From: Ruditapes philippinarum
Lineage: Eukaryota
Assembly: GCF_026571515.1 (NCBI RefSeq)
Contig: NW_026854566.1
Location: 186,001-250,000, forward strand
DNA length: 64,000 bases
Direction of reading: 5' to 3'
Part shown: piece after piece, positions 50,979 through 62,350 of the stretch
Numbering within the stretch: position 1 is the stretch's first letter
Layout of the letters: every line of letters begins with the position of its first letter
Translations under genes and position numbers: made by a program
The notes under the pieces: generated by a model
Told to the model about the DNA's origin: nothing
Seen by the model: the letters and a program-made list of their open reading frames with translations, nothing else
The model's database searches: none

Positions 50979-51195
50979 TTAAACTGTCACTTAGTAGAGA
51001 ACACATTCCATAAAAAAATCTAATTCCCATTTATATGGCCAGCAAAATACCAATATGAAAATAGGCGAGTGAATATAAATTGGGACTATGTGTAAAAGGT
51101 TTGTGAAAATAGTGTGCTTAATATAAAGTTTCATTTACATGTAGTATTTTCTGTCGATTATTCAGTATGTATAATTCTCGCGGTATTTATATATA

Positions 51196-51427
51196 TTTGA
51201 GCCGTGTCAAGACAAAACCAACATAGTGCGTTTGCGACCAGCATGGATCCAGACCAGCCTGCGCATCCGCGCAGTCTGATCAGGATCCATGCTGTTCGCT
51301 TACCAACTCTATTACAAGTAGAGAAACTGATAGCGAACAGCATGGATCCTGATCAGATGGGCAGGCTGGTCTGGATCCATGCTGGTCGCAAACCCACAAT
51401 GTTGGTTTTGTCGTGACGCGGCTCATT
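51196..51427. mobile_element. Palindromic MITE (~230 bp fold-back) flanked by TA
   Basis: tgagccgtgtcaagacaaaaccaacat..gcgaccagcatggatccagaccagcctgc..ctgatcaggatccatgctgttcgct is mirrored by agcgaacagcatggatcctgatcag..gcaggctggtctggatccatgctggtcgc..atgttggttttgtcgtgacgcggctca. Confidence 0.9.
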
Positions 51428-51439
51428 TATGTCAAGTCA

Positions 51440-51580: not shown

Positions 51581-51741
51581 CGAATCAACACTGGTGTAGT
51601 GCCAGTTGAAGGACAAAGAAATTGACACTCGGCAAACTTCACCAGTCACCCCAACAGGTAGATTTATATCCAAACTTTTACCTCAGTATAGTCTTAATTC
51701 ATAACAAAACATTAATTTTACACATTTTATTTTTTAAACAT

Positions 51742-52338
51742 AGACTCAGTGTGGCAATACCACGTGACCGTGACGTCATTTTTGGCATTATTTCCAAGAG
51801 AAAAACCGCTCGCTTCAAACAAGAAAATAGCCGTAAGTATTTTATTTCTGCACCAATTTCTATGGGAAATGCACCAGTCTACGGGAAAAAATATTAGCTT
51901 TCCGCGGAATATTAGATCTCAATCAGTAGATGAGCCATTTTATCAAACACTTTGCCTAACCTTAGAAGTTGTTTGTATACGAGCGGACTGCAGTTGCAAG
52001 CAACTTTGTTTTTTGCATTACCTGATCTATACGATGATTTAAAGACCACTTTAACATCAACCGGGAATATCGAAGGCAAAATCCTGCCTAAATATTTCTA
52101 TTTTGTTACAATTTATTGCGTAAATCTTACATTTTCTTCAATTTTCAATTCTGGCACCAGTTCCAAGCCAAAATAAACGGACTACAGTTTAAAGCAGTTT
52201 TCAGAATTGACTGAAAATACGAAGCAGCGTGCATACTTTTACTTTTACATTATTATGTTAACCACCGAAACCAATTTTTATTAACCAAACGACGTTTATT
52301 CTTAAAAGCGTATGCGTTTTTCTTTTTAAAATTTTACT
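51742..52338 (+). repeat. Left terminal inverted repeat (~597 bp)
   Basis: ctcagtgtggcaataccacgtgaccgtgacgtca...ctttttaaaattttact is the reverse complement of 61061-61646, apart from roughly a dozen substitutions and one ~10 bp indel near 51954-51963. Mirror-image ORFs in the ORF track agree. Confidence 0.97.
51761..51838 (+). promoter_or_regulatory. Putative TIR promoter/leader: E-box CACGTG, CRE TGACGTCA and splice donor GTAAGT (51833-51838); mirrored at 61550-61627
   Basis: The motifs are read directly in both TIRs. Both internal genes have an acceptor just before their coding start and no other obvious upstream exon. Confidence 0.5.
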
Positions 52339-52502
52339 TGCCGCGCTTTATCTAACTTTGATGGTCGTAAAATTGGCCTCTGTTCAATGAAATTTATTTG
52401 CTCGTTCGTAATTACACAGGCATGATTGTGCAAGCAATACCAGTTACTTGTTTCGCACTCATGAATGGAGTCAAATCAAACAAATTCAGGGCTCCGTTTA
52501 CA

Positions 52503-52858
52503 TATAGAGAGGATATTAAATGAATGTAAGTTAAATACTGAATTTATTGCAGCAGTTGAATAAAATTATATTATGCTAGCCTTTGGTGAGCATAATATCA
52601 TTTTATTCAACGAGTTCAATAAATTCAGTAATGAACTTACACGAATTTAATATTCTATTTATGACACACCCAAAATAAAGACCGGTTAAAGTGAAATAGA
52701 GTCATTTTTCACTGGCGCGCCTATATAGTATAACGCTGACATTTAGCGCGTCTTTACACTATGTTTGTATAACGCTAATGACGTCACGTCAAAATATATG
52801 CACGGCCGTGCAATTACATTTTTACGGAGTCGCAAAATCGGCACGGGTGTGTGATAAA
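52503..52858. mobile_element. Small non-autonomous repeat nested in the transposon: ~150 bp hairpin followed by a second short inverted-repeat pair
   Basis: tactgaatttattg..gttgaataaaat..atattatgct pairs with agcataatat..attttattcaac..caataaattcagta; ttatgacacaccc (52659) pairs with gggtgtgtgataa (52846-52858). Confidence 0.55.
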
Positions 52859-52942
52859 TTTAAATATTTAGGCACACAGTTTGAAGTTGTTTAAATCTCT
52901 TTCTTATCTTATGCAATATATCGTGTTTTCTCCTATTTCAGA

Positions 52943-53824
52943 ATGGCTGACAACACATTTGTATGCTCTCAATGCGGGAAAGGTTTCAAGTATAAAAGAA
53001 ATCTAAGAACTCATGAACGTGGACATTCTGGGACGCTACCTTTCACATGCTGTGGAAAGGGATTTGCTTCATCGCGAGAGTTGGAAAGCCACAGGTAATT
53101 CTTTCAGTGTTATTTTTGCAAAGAGTTACTTTAACCTTCAATTATACATATACATGTACTAGGAAAAACTGCAACAGTGCTTTTGTACGTTAGATTCAAG
53201 TTTTTTTATAACGTTTACGTTGTTAATGAAGATTAATATAAAGGAAGTTTCATATCATGAAGTGGATAAAATCTCGTTCCGCCAGAATATCGTGAATATT
53301 TACATGAGTACATACTGCTATAAAATGGAATTAACACATTTTTTTTAGAAACTGCCATAATTAATAGTGTTTCAGAAACTAAACTTGATAAATTATGTGA
53401 CACCGTTTCCCACATATTATTAGAGTGTGTATATGTAGCACTTCAATTGTAAAGGTAAATACATTATTATGGTCAAATTTTCCGTTGGTTTTTTTTCTCT
53501 TCAGTTGTACACATTTAAATTTTATTTTATAGATACTCTGTCCATGATGAAACCAAAAAGTTCGTCTGCAAGACATGTGGAAAAGACTTTGCCAGGGCCC
53601 AGACACTTGCTTTACACGAATCTAGGGAAGCAAGAAATAAAATGTGTACGTGTGATGTGTGTGGTCACAATGCAGTCACCAAAGATGACCTAAAGGTTCA
53701 TCTGGTCACACACAGTGAAGACAGAAGACACGGGTGTCATGTGTGCGGATAGAGATATAAACACAGTAGTTCTGTGTATAAACATGTAAAGAAGACGCAT
53801 AATACTGATCAAAATAACAATTAG
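52943..53824 (+). pseudogene. C2H2 zinc-finger gene inside the transposon; exons 52943-53094 and 53533-53824; five fingers, premature TAG in finger 5
   Basis: MADNTFVCSQCGKGFKYKRNLRTHERGH SGTLPFTCCGKGFASSRELESH R YSVH..FVCKTCGKDFARAQTLALH..CDVCGH..LKVHLVTH..CHVCG*RYKHSSSVYKHVKKTH. Phase-2 GT-AG intron; stop at 53750-53752; AATAAA at 53865-53870. Fingers 2 and 3 are atypical. Confidence 0.88.
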
Positions 53825-56006
53825 CTCTCGAAACAATGTCAACAATAGTAGGATTGTTTAATTGAATAAATTGTTGACTTGTTAAGTCGTAAGTTGCTTG
53901 GTAATAATGTAACGGTAATTTTCAATAATAATAAGTCAGCTAATTTCTGCAAATAAATTTGGACAATGAGGGCATCATTTTTATATCTATACTATTCTAC
54001 TTCACCATTAAATCATTTTCAAAAATGTTATTGTCGATAATCATTTTTATTTTCATTTTTAAGTTTTATTTCAAAAAATTTGACTGTGATAATTGAGTGT
54101 ATTTTTGTCAAATCATTATGCTATTTACTTTTTTGTTCACTTCTCATGACGTCCGTGGGCCTCTTTTCATATATGCTAAATAAACATAGAGTCATGAGTA
54201 ATGCAGTATATTTCATGTTTTAATGTTCGTGTCTTTTGTAAGTATAGAATCACTCAATCATTGTAATCATTATTTTATTTGTGTATTGTTTTTTTCCCAT
54301 ATTTTTCAAGAAATTTGACTGTGATCATTACTGTGATTTTAAAGTACTTATGTTATTTATGTTGTTTATTAATTACAATGTATGTAAATAAACATATTAA
54401 AATACTAAAGCTGGCTGGTTTCATATTACTAAAGTATCAGGTATACGAGACACAAATTTCAACAAGAAGATTCTGATGATATTGAAAAATAAAATTGTTC
54501 TACACAAAGAATAAAGCCTTAATGATAATGAAAGTCCATAGTGATCAATTAAAATCACAATGTAATATCATTTAGTTCTACTCATTCAAATCAGACAAAA
54601 ACTATGGCTGCGAGAGTTTATGATATTTTTGTATACGGTTCATACAAGGATAGCACAATTAAGAGCATAATGACTCGATATATACACAATCTAACGAATC
54701 ATACGTTATGCCGTAAAAAAAGTATGACATGTAAACTTTCAATGCTTGCGCGTCATGTGACGTCAATAAATCAAATGACGCCATGGAAATCTCTTCTATA
54801 CTCAATGTAGTTCAACATATCTTTTATCATTTTTATAATGTCAGACTTATCGATCAAATGCTTGTAATTTATCACTCGGGCATATAGGCCTTGATTATAT
54901 TCCTGTTTATTTGACATTTAAACGTGAAAATTTAATAATGACTAAAATTTCGTTTTTTTTTAATAAGCAAAAAATTTTTAAATTACTTTTGCTGCTGGGG
55001 GCTGTAAAAATTAACCCAGAAAAATTTTGATATAATTTTATTACAACTTATATTAAAATATAAATCTAAAACAATATGCACGTTCTGTAAAGAATCAACA
55101 AGCAATCATTTTAACATATTTCAACTCATCTTTGTGTGCATGTTTGGTATATCACGACTCTGTTATCAGTTATTTCTTAATTAAAATATTAATTATACAA
55201 TCTCCACTGTCCCAAAGTCTCTACTGTCTAAGAAAAAACAACAGAATATTTTGATTATATCTTTAAAATGAAGTATGGTGCACTATATCCGTTGAACAAG
55301 AAACTTATTTTGTAACTTGAATGTTAATTCGTATAACATGTCTTTTTTAAGCTTGATGTAGTTTTGACAATTGTTCATGTTATATCGTTCATGTCGAGTC
55401 CGAGCCTAAAAGTTGGCAGCAATTTGCTTTCGTTTCGCCTTGCATTCTCAAATCGGACAGGTAATGTCCCTCTCGCAACCGCATTTCGGTTCCCATCCTG
55501 CCTTGCCTCTTTTACTTTTGATTTTAACCTCCGCCTTCCAGGGTCATCAAATTGGTGATATCTGAAAAAAGCAACAACACAGAGAACAGTTAATATAATA
55601 AATATATATACATGTATTTTGAAATTTTATGGTAACGTCGGAAAATATATTGATGCTGTCAAAGTTTGCTGAAAATGTCGTCTGCCTTTAGAATACTTAG
55701 ATTATAAGATTATAAGATTTCTCAAAATCAGAAAAAGTAATTTCTGTTGGTCAAATGTATATCCATTGTACTGCCTTTTCAAAGTTCATTGTAATGCTGA
55801 AACACCTTAAATAAAATTATTGTTAATTATTACCGCACGTTAGAAGCTTTGCTGTCAGCATTGACATCGTCCGGGTTCATTTCAAGTGATGGTTCTGAAT
55901 TATACTGTCCTACTAGTTGGTATACATTTTTTCTTGAAGTCCGGTACGAGAACGTTCTGAAAGAAGAGAATGGGGAATTCATGACCCAAGAATTCATTAG
56001 GACGAC

Positions 56007-56154
56007 NNNNNNNNNNNNNNNNNNNNNNNNNNNNNNNNNNNNNNNNNNNNNNNNNNNNNNNNNNNNNNNNNNNNNNNNNNNNNNNNNNNNNNNNNNNNNN
56101 NNNNNNNNNNNNNNNNNNNNNNNNNNNNNNNNNNNNNNNNNNNNNNNNNNNNNN
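56007..56154. other. Assembly gap (N run) within a predicted transposase intron (55957-56205)
   Basis: Ns in the sequence; the flanking splice sites join in frame without needing the gap sequence. Confidence 1.
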
Positions 56155-58326
56155 ATTAAAACAATATAGATTTTAAAGATTGAATGAACCTTTAAGTTGC
56201 CATACCTCTTTGGATCCAATCGCATGTGCAGCTTCTCAATCGTCATGTCCATGAATTTTCCGAATTCATCGCATGTGATCGTGCCCTGTCCCCTTCGGTC
56301 AGACAAAGTTACTTCAGAAAAGAAAGTTTCTCCCATCATGCTGGAGAAGGCTCGTACATGGTAAGTTTTACTTCTGACAATGTGGTACAAAGTTCTCTTT
56401 GCATCAATACTAGCGATAATGGCCTCCCATATTTGTGTTGGCCAACCTTGGACATACATACCAGGTGGTGGAAATGAAGAAAAATCTATATGTCCAATTA
56501 ATCTCGATCGTAAAGCTGAACGGAGGCTTATTCGATTTTCGGCTGAAATACCCGGTTCATCTTCCGCTCGCCACCAGTTTCTAATGTCCCGACAAAGCCT
56601 TGCTTCACTTACGTCTCCATTTTTAAGCATTTCGTTTTCAACAGCTTCGCTAAAATGCGTATTTGCCACAGATACTGTCATGGGTTCAGTAATACAATCC
56701 ATCATGCCAATAGATAACGACGTCTTCTTCGATTTTGCTACTTTTCGCCAAGCCTGATTGCTGAATCCATCTAGACCCCCTTTTGCACTTTTTCTTCTCG
56801 TTCTGGTAAGAAAATGGGAGGAATCGATACAACTAACCTCCAGCTGACATCTACTTCTGCTAAAAGATGGGTAATAGAACTGTTCATCTATGTCTTTGTC
56901 AGCAACCGGAAATTGCCGTTTTGGCTCACTTAGTTGCTGTTGCCATTGCTTATATTCGTCTTCCCAGATATATTCTGCGTAAATAATGTTTAAATCTTTC
57001 TTAGTTAAGGATTTATTAAGTTGCTTAAGAGCAAGTTCTGATAATCGTTTAGGTTGATTATGTGTTTTTGTTTTTGTCATTCTTGTTTTATCTGATAGTT
57101 TGTAATGTAAACCTAACAACTTGCATATTTGTCCGACTTTCGCCTCTTTCCTGTCGCTATCTTTCAATTTCAGTTTATGTGTTCTGTTGATGTACCGTAC
57201 TATGATGCGTAATTCGCAGTCACGCAGCTTTCTTAGAGATTTATCATCAACGAAATACGAGGAAATGTCTCTGGATGATAAATTATCCCATGATTGATTT
57301 GCGTTAACAAGTTTATCGACTCGAAATAATGCCAACAATGAAGTATTGTCTGCTTCATTCCACTGAATAATTTTTTCTTCAGTTGACGGTTGAATTGCTA
57401 CTTCTTTCTCAAAATCAATATGAGTCACTTCTGAATCATCTTTGTCTTCTATTTCTTCTGCATTTATTTCCGTGTCTTCTCCTATAAGTACCGGATTCAG
57501 TACATTTGATGCTATCAGATGTTGTTCGTTTCTGTGCATTTTCCTTTCTTCTTTGTGTTGCCACACTGACTGAAATTTTAGGTAAACGCACTCCATTATT
57601 AGTACATATAATTGATTTTGATTCCGACTGATCCTCTGCGTGAACTTCATTTAGGCGTATAACTACTTTGTTCAGGTCAAAAAACTCAGTAATTATATCA
57701 CGCTTTGACTTCTTTTCAACCTTATTCCAAACATCCTTTTGAAGTTGTAATGTCGTCAGTGGGGCTTCATTTTCATCTCTTATTGCAATACAATGCCACT
57801 GGCCATCGAACGATAACGCAGGTACATACAAACCTTTTTCTTTACAACTGTTCATAACACATTCGACAATTTTTCTCATTGTACTTGTATCGAGTGATCC
57901 ACCTTTAGGAAACCAACAGACAGGCACACTATGAGCCCTGTCTTCTTCCCACTTTCTATCTAGGTCACAGCAAAGGAACACGACTGCCTCTGTTGCTGGT
58001 ATTCGTTGCAATTCATAGAAATCGTCATAACACTTTATCAGCTGATTTAACAGAACCTCACATCTTTGAACCGAGTATATCCCATTGTCATAGCTGTTTT
58101 CCGTATCTGGTTGATGTTTTAAAGATTGGAACACACCAATAAACTCCACCATATCTTCTGAACTACAAGCCTTATGAATTTCAGCAGAGAGCAGTCTGCT
58201 TTCTTCCGACAGCTTCGTTGGTCTTTTAGGCTTATCTACATCATACAATTCCACAGCCGCCTTAAATGCCCTTTGGAATAGAGTAGGGTTTCTTTTAATT
58301 CTAAAGCATGTTGAAATGTCCGGACG

Positions 58327-58806
58327 CCAGCTTAAATAGAGAAGTTCTGGTACATTCAATGCCTCAATTTCACTTAAGCATTGTAACAAATACCTTCGTG
58401 GAAAACTTGTGTGGACATCGTAAATTGGACATTTCAATTCAATACCACACGTAGTACAATCTTCTCTCTCTGTTGTTCTAACGCTGCCGTCTGGAGAAAT
58501 TATCATAAATGGTTTTGTGCGTACAGAATCTAGTTCGATGAACCCTTCTTCGTACATTTTTAGACCTGGACACATCATGGGTAACACTTTACCGACCATG
58601 GTAGCAGCGGCGTTGATCTCGTTTTCAGTTCCGTGTAACATTGCAGAGCTGCATTTTGTTGATCTTTCCTTCTCAGGAAGTCCAACCACTTTAACGTCAA
58701 AGTGTTCTTTTTGACTAGTTAAACCATCTAAGCCTAGTGCATTGTACATCGAGCTTCCAGTAATTTTAACTTGTTTTCTTCGATCAAACCACTGTTCAGA
58801 TCTTTG
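58327..58806 (-). CDS. YqaJ / lambda-exonuclease-like PD-(D/E)XK domain within the transposase
   Basis: QRSEQWFDRR..ITGS, AMLHGTENEINA, YEEG, IISPDG, GIELKCP, YLLQ..LLYLSW: hallmark motifs in order, with catalytic D, E and K intact. Confidence 0.92.
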
Positions 58807-61060
58807 TTTTATTTGACGAGTTGTTGGATTTTCTGATTGTTGTTTTATGTCCGTTTCACAATAGTGTTCACTTTTATGCAAGTCTATATCCGTCTTTGTT
58901 ACCACATTAGGTGATTTTCTAAGGCTGCTAATAAAAATAAGCAGTTCATTAATTAACGCCATACTCTCTCTTATGAATGTGTCTTTATCATATATGAATG
59001 CTATCGTTGCACTTATTGCATATACAAACTTGCCATTTTTCCAATCATCCTTTCCTCCCTTTTCAATAAGTTTCTCTTTGGCGTATTCTTTTTTATTCTT
59101 CAAATCTCTAGATGCGCATATGTTTAAGGACACTATTTTATATTTGACTTGATAAAGTGTCAGAAATTTCTTTTCGTTCATCATCCGTTAATTCTGTGCA
59201 TATGTTATCAACTGTGTTCATTTCAGAGAATTTGCACAACAATCTATTTACTGGCATTTTCCTCTCTTCCAAAATACATTTTCGTTCGCATAGCGACAGA
59301 TCCTGCTCAAATCCAAGTAAAATCAACGTCGCCTGACGTTTCCTTTAATCCTCTTTTAAGCTTCTTGCCATAAATGTTAGACAGTATGAAGCATTTGAAT
59401 TCGAGGCTGCAAGGCTTTCCAACATATCTGTAAATATTCCAGGCTGTCTGCCGTTACTGTCTGTTGAAATGTCATATGGAGTGTAAGATGTTAGAATGTC
59501 CTTCCCCCGGCACAGCAAAGTTAATCTCTGAAATCGTAGGATATAAATGCTTCTCTCGGTTGGCCCGTCACACAGAATTTTCCGGGTTTTTTTTTCCCGA
59601 CATAAGTATAAATGACCCCAATAACGATATCCAATTTTCCAAAAAATTTTTGGGATTTTTGAATATTTATTTCAGCGTACTATCTAAAACATTTAAACCT
59701 TTTTAGCCATAAATGTAAGGTTTTTTTCATAGAAATTTGTTTTGCTTCCCAGTTAAAAGAATTAAGGAATTTTTATCCCTTCCCATGCATTATTCAATCA
59801 AACCGGTTAATAGCTTTTTAATTTCTTCAACCAAGGAAGTAATTTTTTCTGTGTTTTTTTAACATCGAATACCGTCACATAGTTTCTTTTCTAAAAACTT
59901 GTTCGAGTTTCAAGTCATCTTCACCAAAATAATCTCTATTTATTTGATCATTCAAAGCTATGTTTTTTGCCGGGATATTTGCAACCGATGTATATAATGT
60001 TCTCCTAGTTCTTTTTGGAAAAGGTGATTTAGACGGCGTTATCTCTGATTCAGATCGTGATTTGGACGATATTCTTTTCACACTTGACCTCTTTGGCGTC
60101 GAGAACTTAACATTTGATGGCGATCGAACAGATGTAAAGGTTTTCGTTGCCGTTCGGGGTGTTTTGGGGGAATACAACTTGTTGACACATGAGGAAAATT
60201 TGACTCTATTATATATCTCATCTTCTGTGCAGATCCACTGGCGGGAAAATTTGATCTTTCTGGTTTCAGTTTTGAAACGATTTCGCCTGTACCGCTTGCC
60301 AAGCGTGAGTTTTGACTTCGGTTTTGTCATCACATGTTAGTACGGCATTTCCCAGTATGTCAACTTCAGTACGATTGCAGCATACTGAAATATAAAATAT
60401 TGTACTGTAAATATTGTATATCTAGCCATAAACTAACTTTAAAAGAAACAAGTCGTATATAAAACTTTTGTAGACAGACATACTTTAAGATCCAATACGC
60501 CCCAAAATACATACGTTCATTTCATTTCTCAAACGACATTTTATTGTTTGTGCTCTTTGATTTTTTTCTAAAACTTTATAACTAAAAAACTTACTGAAGT
60601 ATATACTGCTTCTGATTATTTTTCGTTATAAGTACAGCATACATGTAGTAATATAATAGTTTGTATGGAAGTCTAAATACTTCTTCTTTACATTTGGCTA
60701 CCTTTATTATGAATGATCTCACATGCAAATCTATTTTAATAAGAAAACGTATCTGACATGTTTAAAACTATTCTTTTCACGATTTAAAATGCTTCACCCC
60801 CCTTTCTTAAGAAGATAAATGTTTATTTCTGACGCAAATTATGCCTTTAATTTGATGAAATTCTTTACTGTTTCAGATTTTTCTATGTGATATACTGTTA
60901 TAAATTATTTTTATAATTTACTGAAAAGAAATATAAACATAGAGAAAAATTGAAATGACTTGTGCAATAATAGATTTTGCTTCCATACACAAATAGATTT
61001 TCTATAATTTGTACCATCACAAAAGAGCAAATATAATCTTTGTACATAACTTTCAAAGTT

Positions 61061-61646
61061 AGTAAAATTTTAAAAAGAAAAACGCATACGCTTTTGAGAA
61101 AAAACATCGTTTGGTTAATAAAAATTGGTTTCGGTGGTTAACATAATAATAGGAAGAGAAAGTATGCACGCTGCTTCGTATTTTCAGTCAATTCTGAAAA
61201 CTGCTTTAAACTGTAGTCCGTTTATTTTGGCTTGGAACTGGTGCCAGAATTGAAAATTGAAGAAAATGTAAGATTTACGCAATAAATTGTAACAAAATAG
61301 AAATATTTAGGCAGGACTTTGCCTTCGATATTCCCGGTTGATGTTAAAGTGGTCTTTAAATCATCGTATAGTTCAGGTAATGCAAAAAACAAAGTTGCTT
61401 GCAACTGCAGTCCGCTCGTATACAAACAACTTCTAAAGTGTTTGATAAAATGGCTCATCTACTGATTGAGATCTAATATTCCGCGGAAAGCTAATATTTT
61501 TTCCCGTAGACTGGTGCATTTCCCATAGAAATTGGTGCAGAAATAAAATACTTACGGCTATTTTCTTGTTTGAAGCGAGCGGTTTTTCTCTTGGAAATGA
61601 TGCCAAAAATGACGTCACGGTCACGTGGTATTGCCACACTGAGACT
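61061..61646 (-). repeat. Right terminal inverted repeat (~586 bp)
   Basis: agtaaaattttaaaaag...gacgtcacggtcacgtggtattgccacactgag mirrors 51742-52338. Confidence 0.97.
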
Positions 61647-62350
61647 GTCACATGACGTAAGTAACTATCAAATACAATAACATACAACAGCCATTCGGTC
61701 ACGTGATATATCCGTACACCAATGAACACAAGTTGTAAATATATCTTAACTATTGTCATATATTTTTCTGGTTTAAATACCTTCATTTGCGACAATTACT
61801 TTACAAAGCAACTTAAGTTCTTCAAGATATTGTCAGAATTATATGCTACAATACATATACTAACTTTAGACATCATTTCTATGAACTCTAATTAACGTCA
61901 GTGTGTTGTTCTCATCTATAATGAAAAAACGAGGTAATAAAATAAGATAACAAGATGTTATTCAAATGAAATTGTCTTTTATGCACTGGATGACACATAA
62001 TCAACGCAGAAGTATATATTAAATGTCATGTGGTACTTCATCCTGGTTGTCGGTCACATTTATCCTTCCATCAAGTACTCAGTACTTACAGGCACATTAC
62101 ACACCGGAGAAACTGAAAAATTAGAATATCAACAAAATAATAAACATGTACATATATATCTTTTTAAATACTCGTATATTCATAAAATATGTGAAACACA
62201 CAAAAATGCTGCTTTGCGGGAGGATCTTTTAAAGAGAAGAACCGTGTACCAGATTTCAGGCAAGGGCGGGGGCTCATACCAATTTTCGGATCCATAACGG
62301 TCTAAACTTTGAAATCAATAAGTTACACAACATTAACACCATCCTTGTTT

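Follow-up and report, generated by a model that had tools for sequence, protein, structure and literature searches.

What kind of mobile element places a transposase-like coding region, a YqaJ-type exonuclease domain and a zinc-finger gene between inverted repeats several hundred base pairs long? The question is raised by a stretch of 64,000 nucleotides from the bivalve Ruditapes philippinarum (hereafter the window, contig C3053 of the 1.4-Gb assembly), in which a preliminary description, made from the letters alone, had seen a two-gene, P-like transposon of a distinct lineage. We find that positions 51747-61641 very probably represent a decayed autonomous cut-and-paste DNA transposon, whose lineage is akin to that of the P-element/THAP9 ('TNP-like') transposases. 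Predicted folds place the element beside the P superfamily and not as a canonical member of it, because it lacks both a THAP domain and a target site duplication (TSD) of the canonical length. The interpretation given in the preliminary description is supported, each of its architectural claims having held. Its observations stood in part: the terminal inverted repeats (TIRs) and the two convergent genes remain, and the termini, the reading frame and the exon structure are corrected here.

The element is a decayed copy of 9.9 kb, both ends of which begin 5'-CAGTGTGGCAAT. Every copy among 30 aligned genomic loci with the repeat starts with this sequence, similarity ends exactly there, and the tip is invariant across all 30. 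The terminal 22-mer occurs at only two sites within the window, which are the two ends of the element (0 matches are expected by chance). The inverted-repeat arms (51742-52338 and 61061-61646) form three collinear blocks of 286, 212 and 90 nt that are 97-99% complementary. This corresponds to TIRs of about 595 bp, one at 51747-52338 on the plus strand (tip CAGTGTGGCAATACCACGTGAC) and one at 61061-61641 on the minus strand, in good agreement with the very long TIRs of ~590 bp originally claimed. However, the span of 51739-61649 then given to the element was 8 nt too long on each side, and the CATAG at 51739, taken for the left terminus, is flanking DNA. Within the tip, at 51759-51778, an E-box (CACGTG) and a palindrome resembling a cAMP response element (TGACGTCA) lie 12-32 nt from the end; the word CACGTGAC is also present in the right flank near 61700.

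Directly outside the TIRs, an identical AGACT stands on the left (51742-51746) and on the right (61642-61646). Perfect 5-bp duplications were found in seven of eight elements checked, with a chance of 1/1024 each, a result that cannot be explained by chance. The TSDs are AGACT in the window copy, TATAC in the copy on contig C7054, and TAAAT, CTTCA, TAAAT, TACCA, AACAT and GGGTC in six members of a shorter family of 2.9 kb described below.

In the genome the element of about 10 kb exists in three full copies, which share 94-95% identity, and in addition as one fragment at a contig end. The same order of parts is seen in all three. Because of this shared order and the existence of TSDs, a chance flanking of the genes by two unrelated repeats is ruled out; inverted repeats that never flank these genes together elsewhere, which had been named as one finding that would overturn the reading, are not what the genome contains. 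The 2.9-kb elements constitute a non-autonomous family with TIRs of 509 bp. Overall these are ~80% like the TIRs of the 10-kb element, but the likeness rises to ~95% within the first 134 bp and is complete over the terminal 22 bp. At least 29 of the 40 candidates scored (from 1,034 first-look candidates) are full-length members, 90-97% identical to their reference copy. The 10-kb and 2.9-kb elements together form the usual pattern of autonomous and non-autonomous transposons. We also looked for a partner TIR less than 1 kb from the 80%-identical TIR matches and found none; those matches are the ends of 2.9-kb elements.

Between the TIRs, the minus strand carries a transposase pseudogene (56155-60330), with frameshifts or stops near 59878, 59371/59347, 59160 and 57565. 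Its coding region lies here in at least five pieces (60336-59878, 59671-59348, 59344-59141, 59187-57439 and 57650-56155). In the copy on contig C12529, one frameshift divides the equivalent region into two open frames, one of 658 aa that begins with MTKPKS and one of 730 aa, and since this copy reads through without any introns, the presence of introns in the transposase was rejected. A JGI data set contains P0001, an uninterrupted version of 950 aa that shares 96% identity with the C12529 query and matches the window protein at 129 of the 132 aligned residues (98%). Given the frames of C12529 and the uninterrupted P0001, the ancestral transposase was a single intronless open reading frame (ORF) of ~1,420 aa. 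The window copy is dead, as are all three assembled copies, each broken differently.

A minus-strand transposase of ~1,470 codons had been proposed for this region. The large minus-strand coding region between the TIRs is indeed present, although split as above, but the codon count runs through an assembly gap of 148 N (56007-56154) and exceeds the ancestral length. Protein similarity to relatives stops at LDPKR (56205), 16 codons ahead of the gap, and the closest intact relative (P0004) ends 12 residues past this point; the 58 codons counted beyond the gap have no support as coding sequence. The gap therefore falls where the transposase ORF naturally ends on its 3' side, or just past this point, so that inferences on its domains are unaffected. 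Moreover, the DNA on both sides of the gap is collinear, and in the same orientation, with the other two copies (the interval measures 206 bp in C7054), and both flanks therefore belong to one element.

According to the models described below, the protein starts with a basic N-terminus without a THAP domain, followed by a P-like helical DNA-binding region, the beta1 strand of an RNase H fold with the first catalytic Asp, and a coiled-coil stalk bearing the YqaJ domain. It continues with the remainder of the RNase H fold, including the second Asp; an acidic linker and an insertion domain that is helical and P-like then lead to the D(2)H motif and the catalytic Glu. All these features lie on the minus strand. 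The beta1 motif (59369-59389) reads SYCLTF and is continued by the D-G-K-K of the relatives, the codon of the first Asp being destroyed in the window by the frameshift at ~59371; upstream of YqaJ the relatives share the strand L-T-F-D-G-K-K and then G-D-x-D-L-x-G-x-E. The YqaJ/lambda-exonuclease domain, of the PD-(D/E)xK type, occupies 58200-58830 (motifs W..R...ITGSS, ISPDG and IELKCP), flanked by the two parts of the stalk (~59300-58830 and 58200-58000). Strands beta3-beta4 (AVVFLCCDLDR ... LSFDGQW) lie at 57796-57987 with the second catalytic Asp at 57805-57807, and the D(2)H motif (SCIDSSH, 56814-56834) is found downstream of the disordered acidic linker and the helical insertion. The third catalytic residue is the Glu at 56328-56330 in MMGETFF (56319-56339), within the stretch aligned to P transposase, which extends up to P residue 561.

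These residues are strongly conserved among relatives that are only 22-45% identical. The first Asp is present in 57/57, the second in 56/59, the Asp and His of D(2)H in 55/56 and 56/56, respectively, and the Glu in 58/59, while the catalytic D, E and K of the lambda exonuclease are each found in 59/59. Such conservation argues that both the Asp-Asp-Glu (DDE) and the exonuclease active sites are under selection. We considered the strand after YqaJ that contains 'DLDR' as the place of the first Asp and rejected it: only its Arg is invariant, and the strand aligns with residue 250 of P transposase, past the first catalytic Asp of that enzyme (D230; PMC7776569). As the preliminary description had stated, no THAP domain is present: Pfam identified none in the N-terminal or other pieces of the window protein, nor in six full-length relatives (1,470-1,583 aa).

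The link to P transposase comes from two structure predictions. The first, an AlphaFold2 model of the 730-aa frame of C12529 built from 67 sequences (predicted local distance difference test, pLDDT, 82), had only two significant PDB matches in Foldseek, 6p5a and 6pe2, both of the Drosophila P transposase (E 2e-4, probability 1.0). Residue 147 of the model aligns with P residue 250, and the aligned P range (250-561) covers the P helical insertion domain and starts past D230. In structure, the insertion domain aligns with the domain by which P binds GTP. When 48,161 chains were compared exhaustively, the scores were 8.5-9.0 for RAG1, 8.0 for the amphioxus RAG-like protein, 7.2 for Transib and 6-7 for Hermes. 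The second model is that of L049, an intact sibling ORF of the same genome (1,175 aa, ~40% identical, pLDDT 82.6). Its residues 52-1170 align with residues 135-489 of the 6p5a chain, including the helical DNA-binding region upstream of beta1, and the minimal HIV-1 integrase core aligns with it between residue 167, in the LTFDGKK strand, and residue 1053, in D(2)H, with a root-mean-square deviation of 2.4 Å. The predicted beta1 strand aligns with HIV integrase from residue 57 of the latter and with P transposase upstream of residue 250. Lambda exonuclease matches residues 349-553 of the L049 model only, and the long helices at 232-324 resemble the LSD1 tower coiled coil. Since the integrase and P alignments span the nuclease, the modelled RNase H fold is broken behind its first hairpin, where the stalk with the nuclease is inserted. 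We thus recognize a lambda-exonuclease fold with its catalytic D ... E-x-K and, in the models, a P-type RNase H DDE core split by an alpha-helical insertion domain. This agrees with the P-type catalytic core with an internal exonuclease that had been proposed, the nuclease being predicted to lie between beta1 and beta3.

Relatives of this protein are numerous. A profile search retrieved 2,867 cluster representatives at E <=1e-3 and 674 at E <=1e-30, many of them 1,400-1,600 aa long. Those with a named source come from the bivalves Mytilus, Mya, Dreissena and Ruditapes, the gastropod Batillaria, the annelid Owenia and amphioxus, and are annotated as hypothetical or as 'YqaJ viral recombinase domain-containing'. 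To judge from these sequences, the design is widespread in animals. The Pfam YqaJ profile is above its cut-off in all six full-length relatives. TNP-like_RNaseH_N (PF21787) is weakly matched by six of the 12 relatives when E values as high as 1 are allowed, the best being 3.2e-4, and only P0041 exceeds the cut-off (25.8 versus 24.6 bits), over profile positions 64-132 only, after the YqaJ domain; we could not find any match to the Pfam TNP-like GBD or RNaseH_C profiles. In the ESM Atlas only the family's own unnamed cluster was matched. In the same genome, sibling families 28-46% identical to this one have open frames of 1,293-1,489 aa on contigs C14003, C10957, C4410, C4476, C10369, C15578, C12788 and C10487, those on the first five contigs being 1,408-1,489 aa long, and the lineage may therefore still have coding-competent members here. 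The preliminary description had called the lineage little described, and consistently with this our literature searches found no publication with this design; they did not cover Repbase or Dfam, where the family may be catalogued.

The second gene lies on the plus strand, convergent with the transposase, between the TIRs of all three copies. It had been described as a five-finger C2H2 gene. Its convergent position and five finger-like units stand, but it consists of two coding exons and carries a premature stop in this copy. Exon 1 (52943-53094) starts with an ATG at 52943, one nt past an AG acceptor, and encodes finger 1 together with the first part of finger 2, which is degenerate (Pfam zf-C2H2, E 6.6e-10); it ends at the donor AG|GTAAT at 53095 and is conserved in the other two copies (L036 and L037). 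Exon 2 (53533-53824) follows the acceptor TTATAG|, encodes fingers 2-5, and ends with a natural stop at 53822-53824, with an AATAAA ~40 nt downstream. Three of the five finger units are canonical, fingers 2 and 3 being degenerate. In the window copy a premature TAG (53750-53752) interrupts finger 5, whereas the other two copies are intact and have a Lys codon there. Six RNA reads have A instead of T at 53750, giving Lys as in the intact copies, and transcripts of intact zinc-finger copies therefore exist at a low level.

The co-occurrence of the zinc-finger gene with the transposase extends beyond the three copies. The best non-self genome matches to exon 2 (150 of 2,287 candidates were scored) are 38-39% identical and lie on contigs C11575, C6 and C2386, in each case convergent with, and 2-3 kb past the 3' end of, a sibling transposase that is 42-46% identical to this one. 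Such conserved arrangement, in the three copies and in three sibling families of the same genome, makes the gene a stable part of the clade. A C2H2 scan of 1.5-kb flanks at eight sibling loci detected none, these flanks being too short to reach the expected position.

The left TIR may take part in expression of this gene. One RNA-seq contig (run X19, depth 2.8, with 33 nt on the leader side) connects position 51832 with 52942 and leaves out the 1,109 nt between them, which are bounded by GT..AG. Position 51832, 86 nt inside the TIR, directly precedes a consensus GTAAGT donor at 51833, and position 52942 is one base ahead of the ATG. This suggests that the TIR supplies a non-coding leader exon, probably at 51790-51832 on the plus strand (with its 3' end defined), to the zinc-finger gene. 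By symmetry the right TIR has the same GTAAGT donor ~86 nt from its tip, and a TTTCAG acceptor is present at ~60385, ~52 nt upstream of the transposase ATG, to which this donor is predicted to be spliced.

Several observations weigh against assigning the element to the neighbourhood of P. Two defining features of canonical P elements, the THAP domain and a TSD of 7-8 bp, are absent. The pieces of the window protein have no Pfam match to YqaJ or TNP-like profiles at E <=0.1, and these pieces (with phmmer) as well as a 12-sequence profile gave only noise against PDB sequences; what supports the assignment of the family is therefore predicted structures and its relatives. The model of the inserted nuclease is that of the sibling L049, truncated before the Glu, and not of the window element. 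The PDB holds no Kolobok or MuDR structure, so that the fold comparison leaves either as possibly just as close. The C12529 copy (G000:C12529:119318-129424) has no TSD, its flanks being ATGTT and AATAG, for which recombination between two copies or mutation of a flank is a possible explanation. As to the second gene, the leader splice comes from a single low-depth contig and RNA depth over the zinc-finger exons is 0-2. Finally, the roles that we propose below for the nuclease, the zinc-finger protein and the TIR promoters are ones that we infer.

Three other readings were weighed. Transposons do capture host and viral fragments, and the exonuclease domain, the zinc-finger gene or both might be passengers of this kind (a captured viral recombinase or a host gene) with no role in transposition. 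The weak expression of the zinc-finger gene in the RNA runs examined and the degeneration of its fingers 2 and 3 would fit such a history. However, the nuclease triad is invariant at the low identities given above in molluscs, an annelid and amphioxus, and a nuclease placed inside the catalytic fold could not be lost without remodelling the enzyme. The zinc-finger homologues, for their part, keep their convergent position in three sibling families whose transposases have diverged considerably. We thus regard the passenger reading as highly unlikely.

Membership in the KolobokE lineage appears no more than a slim prospect. KolobokE is a described group of Kolobok transposons with a lambda-exonuclease-like nuclease of the PD-(D/E)xK type, found in animals including molluscs (PMC9587614). 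It resembles our element as a eukaryotic DDE transposon of invertebrates that couples a transposase to such a nuclease. The Kolobok transposases, which have P, hAT and MuDR as relatives, also contain a C/DxxH motif, and the fold search was unable to rank KolobokE. However, KolobokE belongs to a different DDE clade and appends its nuclease to the transposase domain on the downstream side, whereas the nuclease of our protein is set into the RNase H fold, between beta1 and beta3. In nearly all Kolobok transposases, moreover, a zinc finger separates C/DxxH from the final Glu; at this place the consensus of 60 relatives of our protein has only one conserved Cys. The TSD of Kolobok is TTAA, and none of the 5-bp TSDs found here is TTAA; the Pfam matches of the relatives are to TNP-like_RNaseH_N.

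A hAT-type or Transib/RAG-type element, as might be suggested by the 5-bp TSDs (shared with Transib/RAG-like elements), by a CAGTG tip that fits the YARNG common in hAT, and by the presence of Hermes, RAG1, BbRAGL and HzTransib in the fold match lists, is scarcely credible, since neither the window pieces nor the relatives have a Pfam match to RAG1 or to the hAT dimerisation domain, the tip CAGTGTG differs from the CACWRTG heptamer, and neither a RAG1-type core with CACWRTG-like termini nor a Hermes-type core with a C-terminal dimerisation domain was recognized.

A relationship to P and THAP9 therefore stands as the best explanation, with clear departures from both. Canonical P elements have 31-bp TIRs, an 8-bp TSD, a THAP domain and a 17-nt staggered cut of unknown mechanism, and zebrafish THAP9 elements also have an 8-bp TSD (PMC7776569). 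Our element shares with them a helical DNA-binding region upstream of the catalytic core, the D(2)H motif and a tip starting with CA. Unlike them, it has no THAP domain, a 5-bp TSD, which sets the lineage further from canonical P, and a second, zinc-finger gene. Its transposase is also much longer (~1,420 aa compared with 751 aa for P transposase), with a stalk and lambda exonuclease of ~450 residues between beta1/beta2 and beta3 and an acidic and helical linker of ~300 residues between the second Asp and D(2)H.

Parallels for single features exist elsewhere. Galileo, a Drosophila member of the P superfamily, has TIRs of 0.5-1.2 kb, and is similar to our element in its very long TIRs, its intronless transposase ORF and the fact that all known copies are defective (PMC3688188). 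However, Galileo keeps a THAP domain with binding sites in the TIRs, and has neither an exonuclease nor a second gene. ISL2EU (PIF/Harbinger-ISL2EU-Spy) is also a two-gene DNA transposon with a DDE transposase and a YqaJ exonuclease (PMC4482050), but its YqaJ is a separate ORF, the PIF-like transposase has a THAP domain, the TSD is 2 bp, and the TIRs of 6-259 bp start with GG (PMC4482050), whereas our element has a single fused ORF, a 5-bp TSD and CA termini. None of P, Galileo, KolobokE and ISL2EU combines a nuclease inside the fold with a 5-bp TSD and a C2H2 partner. TSD length also sets Galileo apart, at 7 bp. In Tn7, which has a 5-bp TSD, the DDE transposase TnsB cleaves and joins the 3' ends and TnsA, a nuclease of PD-(D/E)xK fold, cuts the 5' strand. 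Tn7 is however bacterial, its two enzymes are separate polypeptides and TnsA is not of the YqaJ type, so that the analogy concerns mechanism only and implies no homology.

These comparisons suggest how the element might have moved. The DDE site would cut the 3' ends and transfer them to phosphates of the target with a stagger of 5 bp. The 5'-3' nuclease, held by its stalk over the active site, most likely processes the non-transferred 5' strand at the transposon ends, or resects the donor break, which would favour homologous repair; in Tn7 this task falls to TnsA, and P elements accomplish it through their 17-nt staggered cut. A specific role in strand processing is a possibility to which we give less than even weight. 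The zinc-finger protein and the P-like helical domain are the prime candidates for recognition of the conserved terminal ~130 bp, where they would replace the missing THAP domain, and each TIR probably supplies a promoter and a short leader exon to the adjacent gene. Taken further, the element could represent a sister lineage of the P superfamily that spans the metazoans and is as yet uncatalogued. In this lineage a lambda-type 5'-3' exonuclease, inserted into the RNase H fold on a coiled-coil stalk, would have taken over processing of the non-transferred strand, the target stagger would have become 5 bp, and a separately encoded C2H2 partner would stand in place of THAP. This last proposal is tentative, and we consider it rather unlikely in its full form.

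If it were true, the element would be a eukaryotic, single-chain counterpart of the division of labour between TnsA and TnsB. How P-type transposases cut the second strand is still unresolved, and a P-like enzyme with a built-in, conserved nuclease would offer a direct handle on the problem, nuclease and DDE mutants being separable within one polypeptide. It would also be the third group of transposons with a DDE transposase and a recruited YqaJ-type nuclease, after ISL2EU and KolobokE and with a different topology, and a third recruitment would argue that cut-and-paste elements of eukaryotes repeatedly require end resection. Public databases contain more than 2,800 representative proteins that are labelled only as 'YqaJ viral recombinase domain-containing' or 'hypothetical' and could be re-annotated as transposases. 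Where mollusc genome papers count 'endogenous viral' YqaJ genes (PMC7826175, PMC10225492), members of this family are probably among them.

Three further features of the locus were noted. A nested, MITE-like (miniature inverted-repeat transposable element) repeat of ~358 bp lies at 52502-52859, with an internal inverted repeat (arms 52504-52577 and 52589-52662). It is a high-copy sequence (3,019 first-look genome candidates, ~93% identity), is present in all three copies, and sits inside the leader intron, between the left TIR and the zinc-finger ATG. RNA depth over this repeat is 150-480, which we assign to other copies of it since the reads continue into unlike sequence. RNA contigs from two runs skip 274 nt at 55559-55834. 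Two letters differ at the joint, the ends are non-canonical, and the contigs probably come from another copy with a deletion and do not mark an intron. Finally, outside the left end of the element, a second inverted-repeat pair at 51193-51430 (82 nt at 88% and 45 nt at 78% complementarity) probably represents an unrelated small foldback or MITE in the flank.

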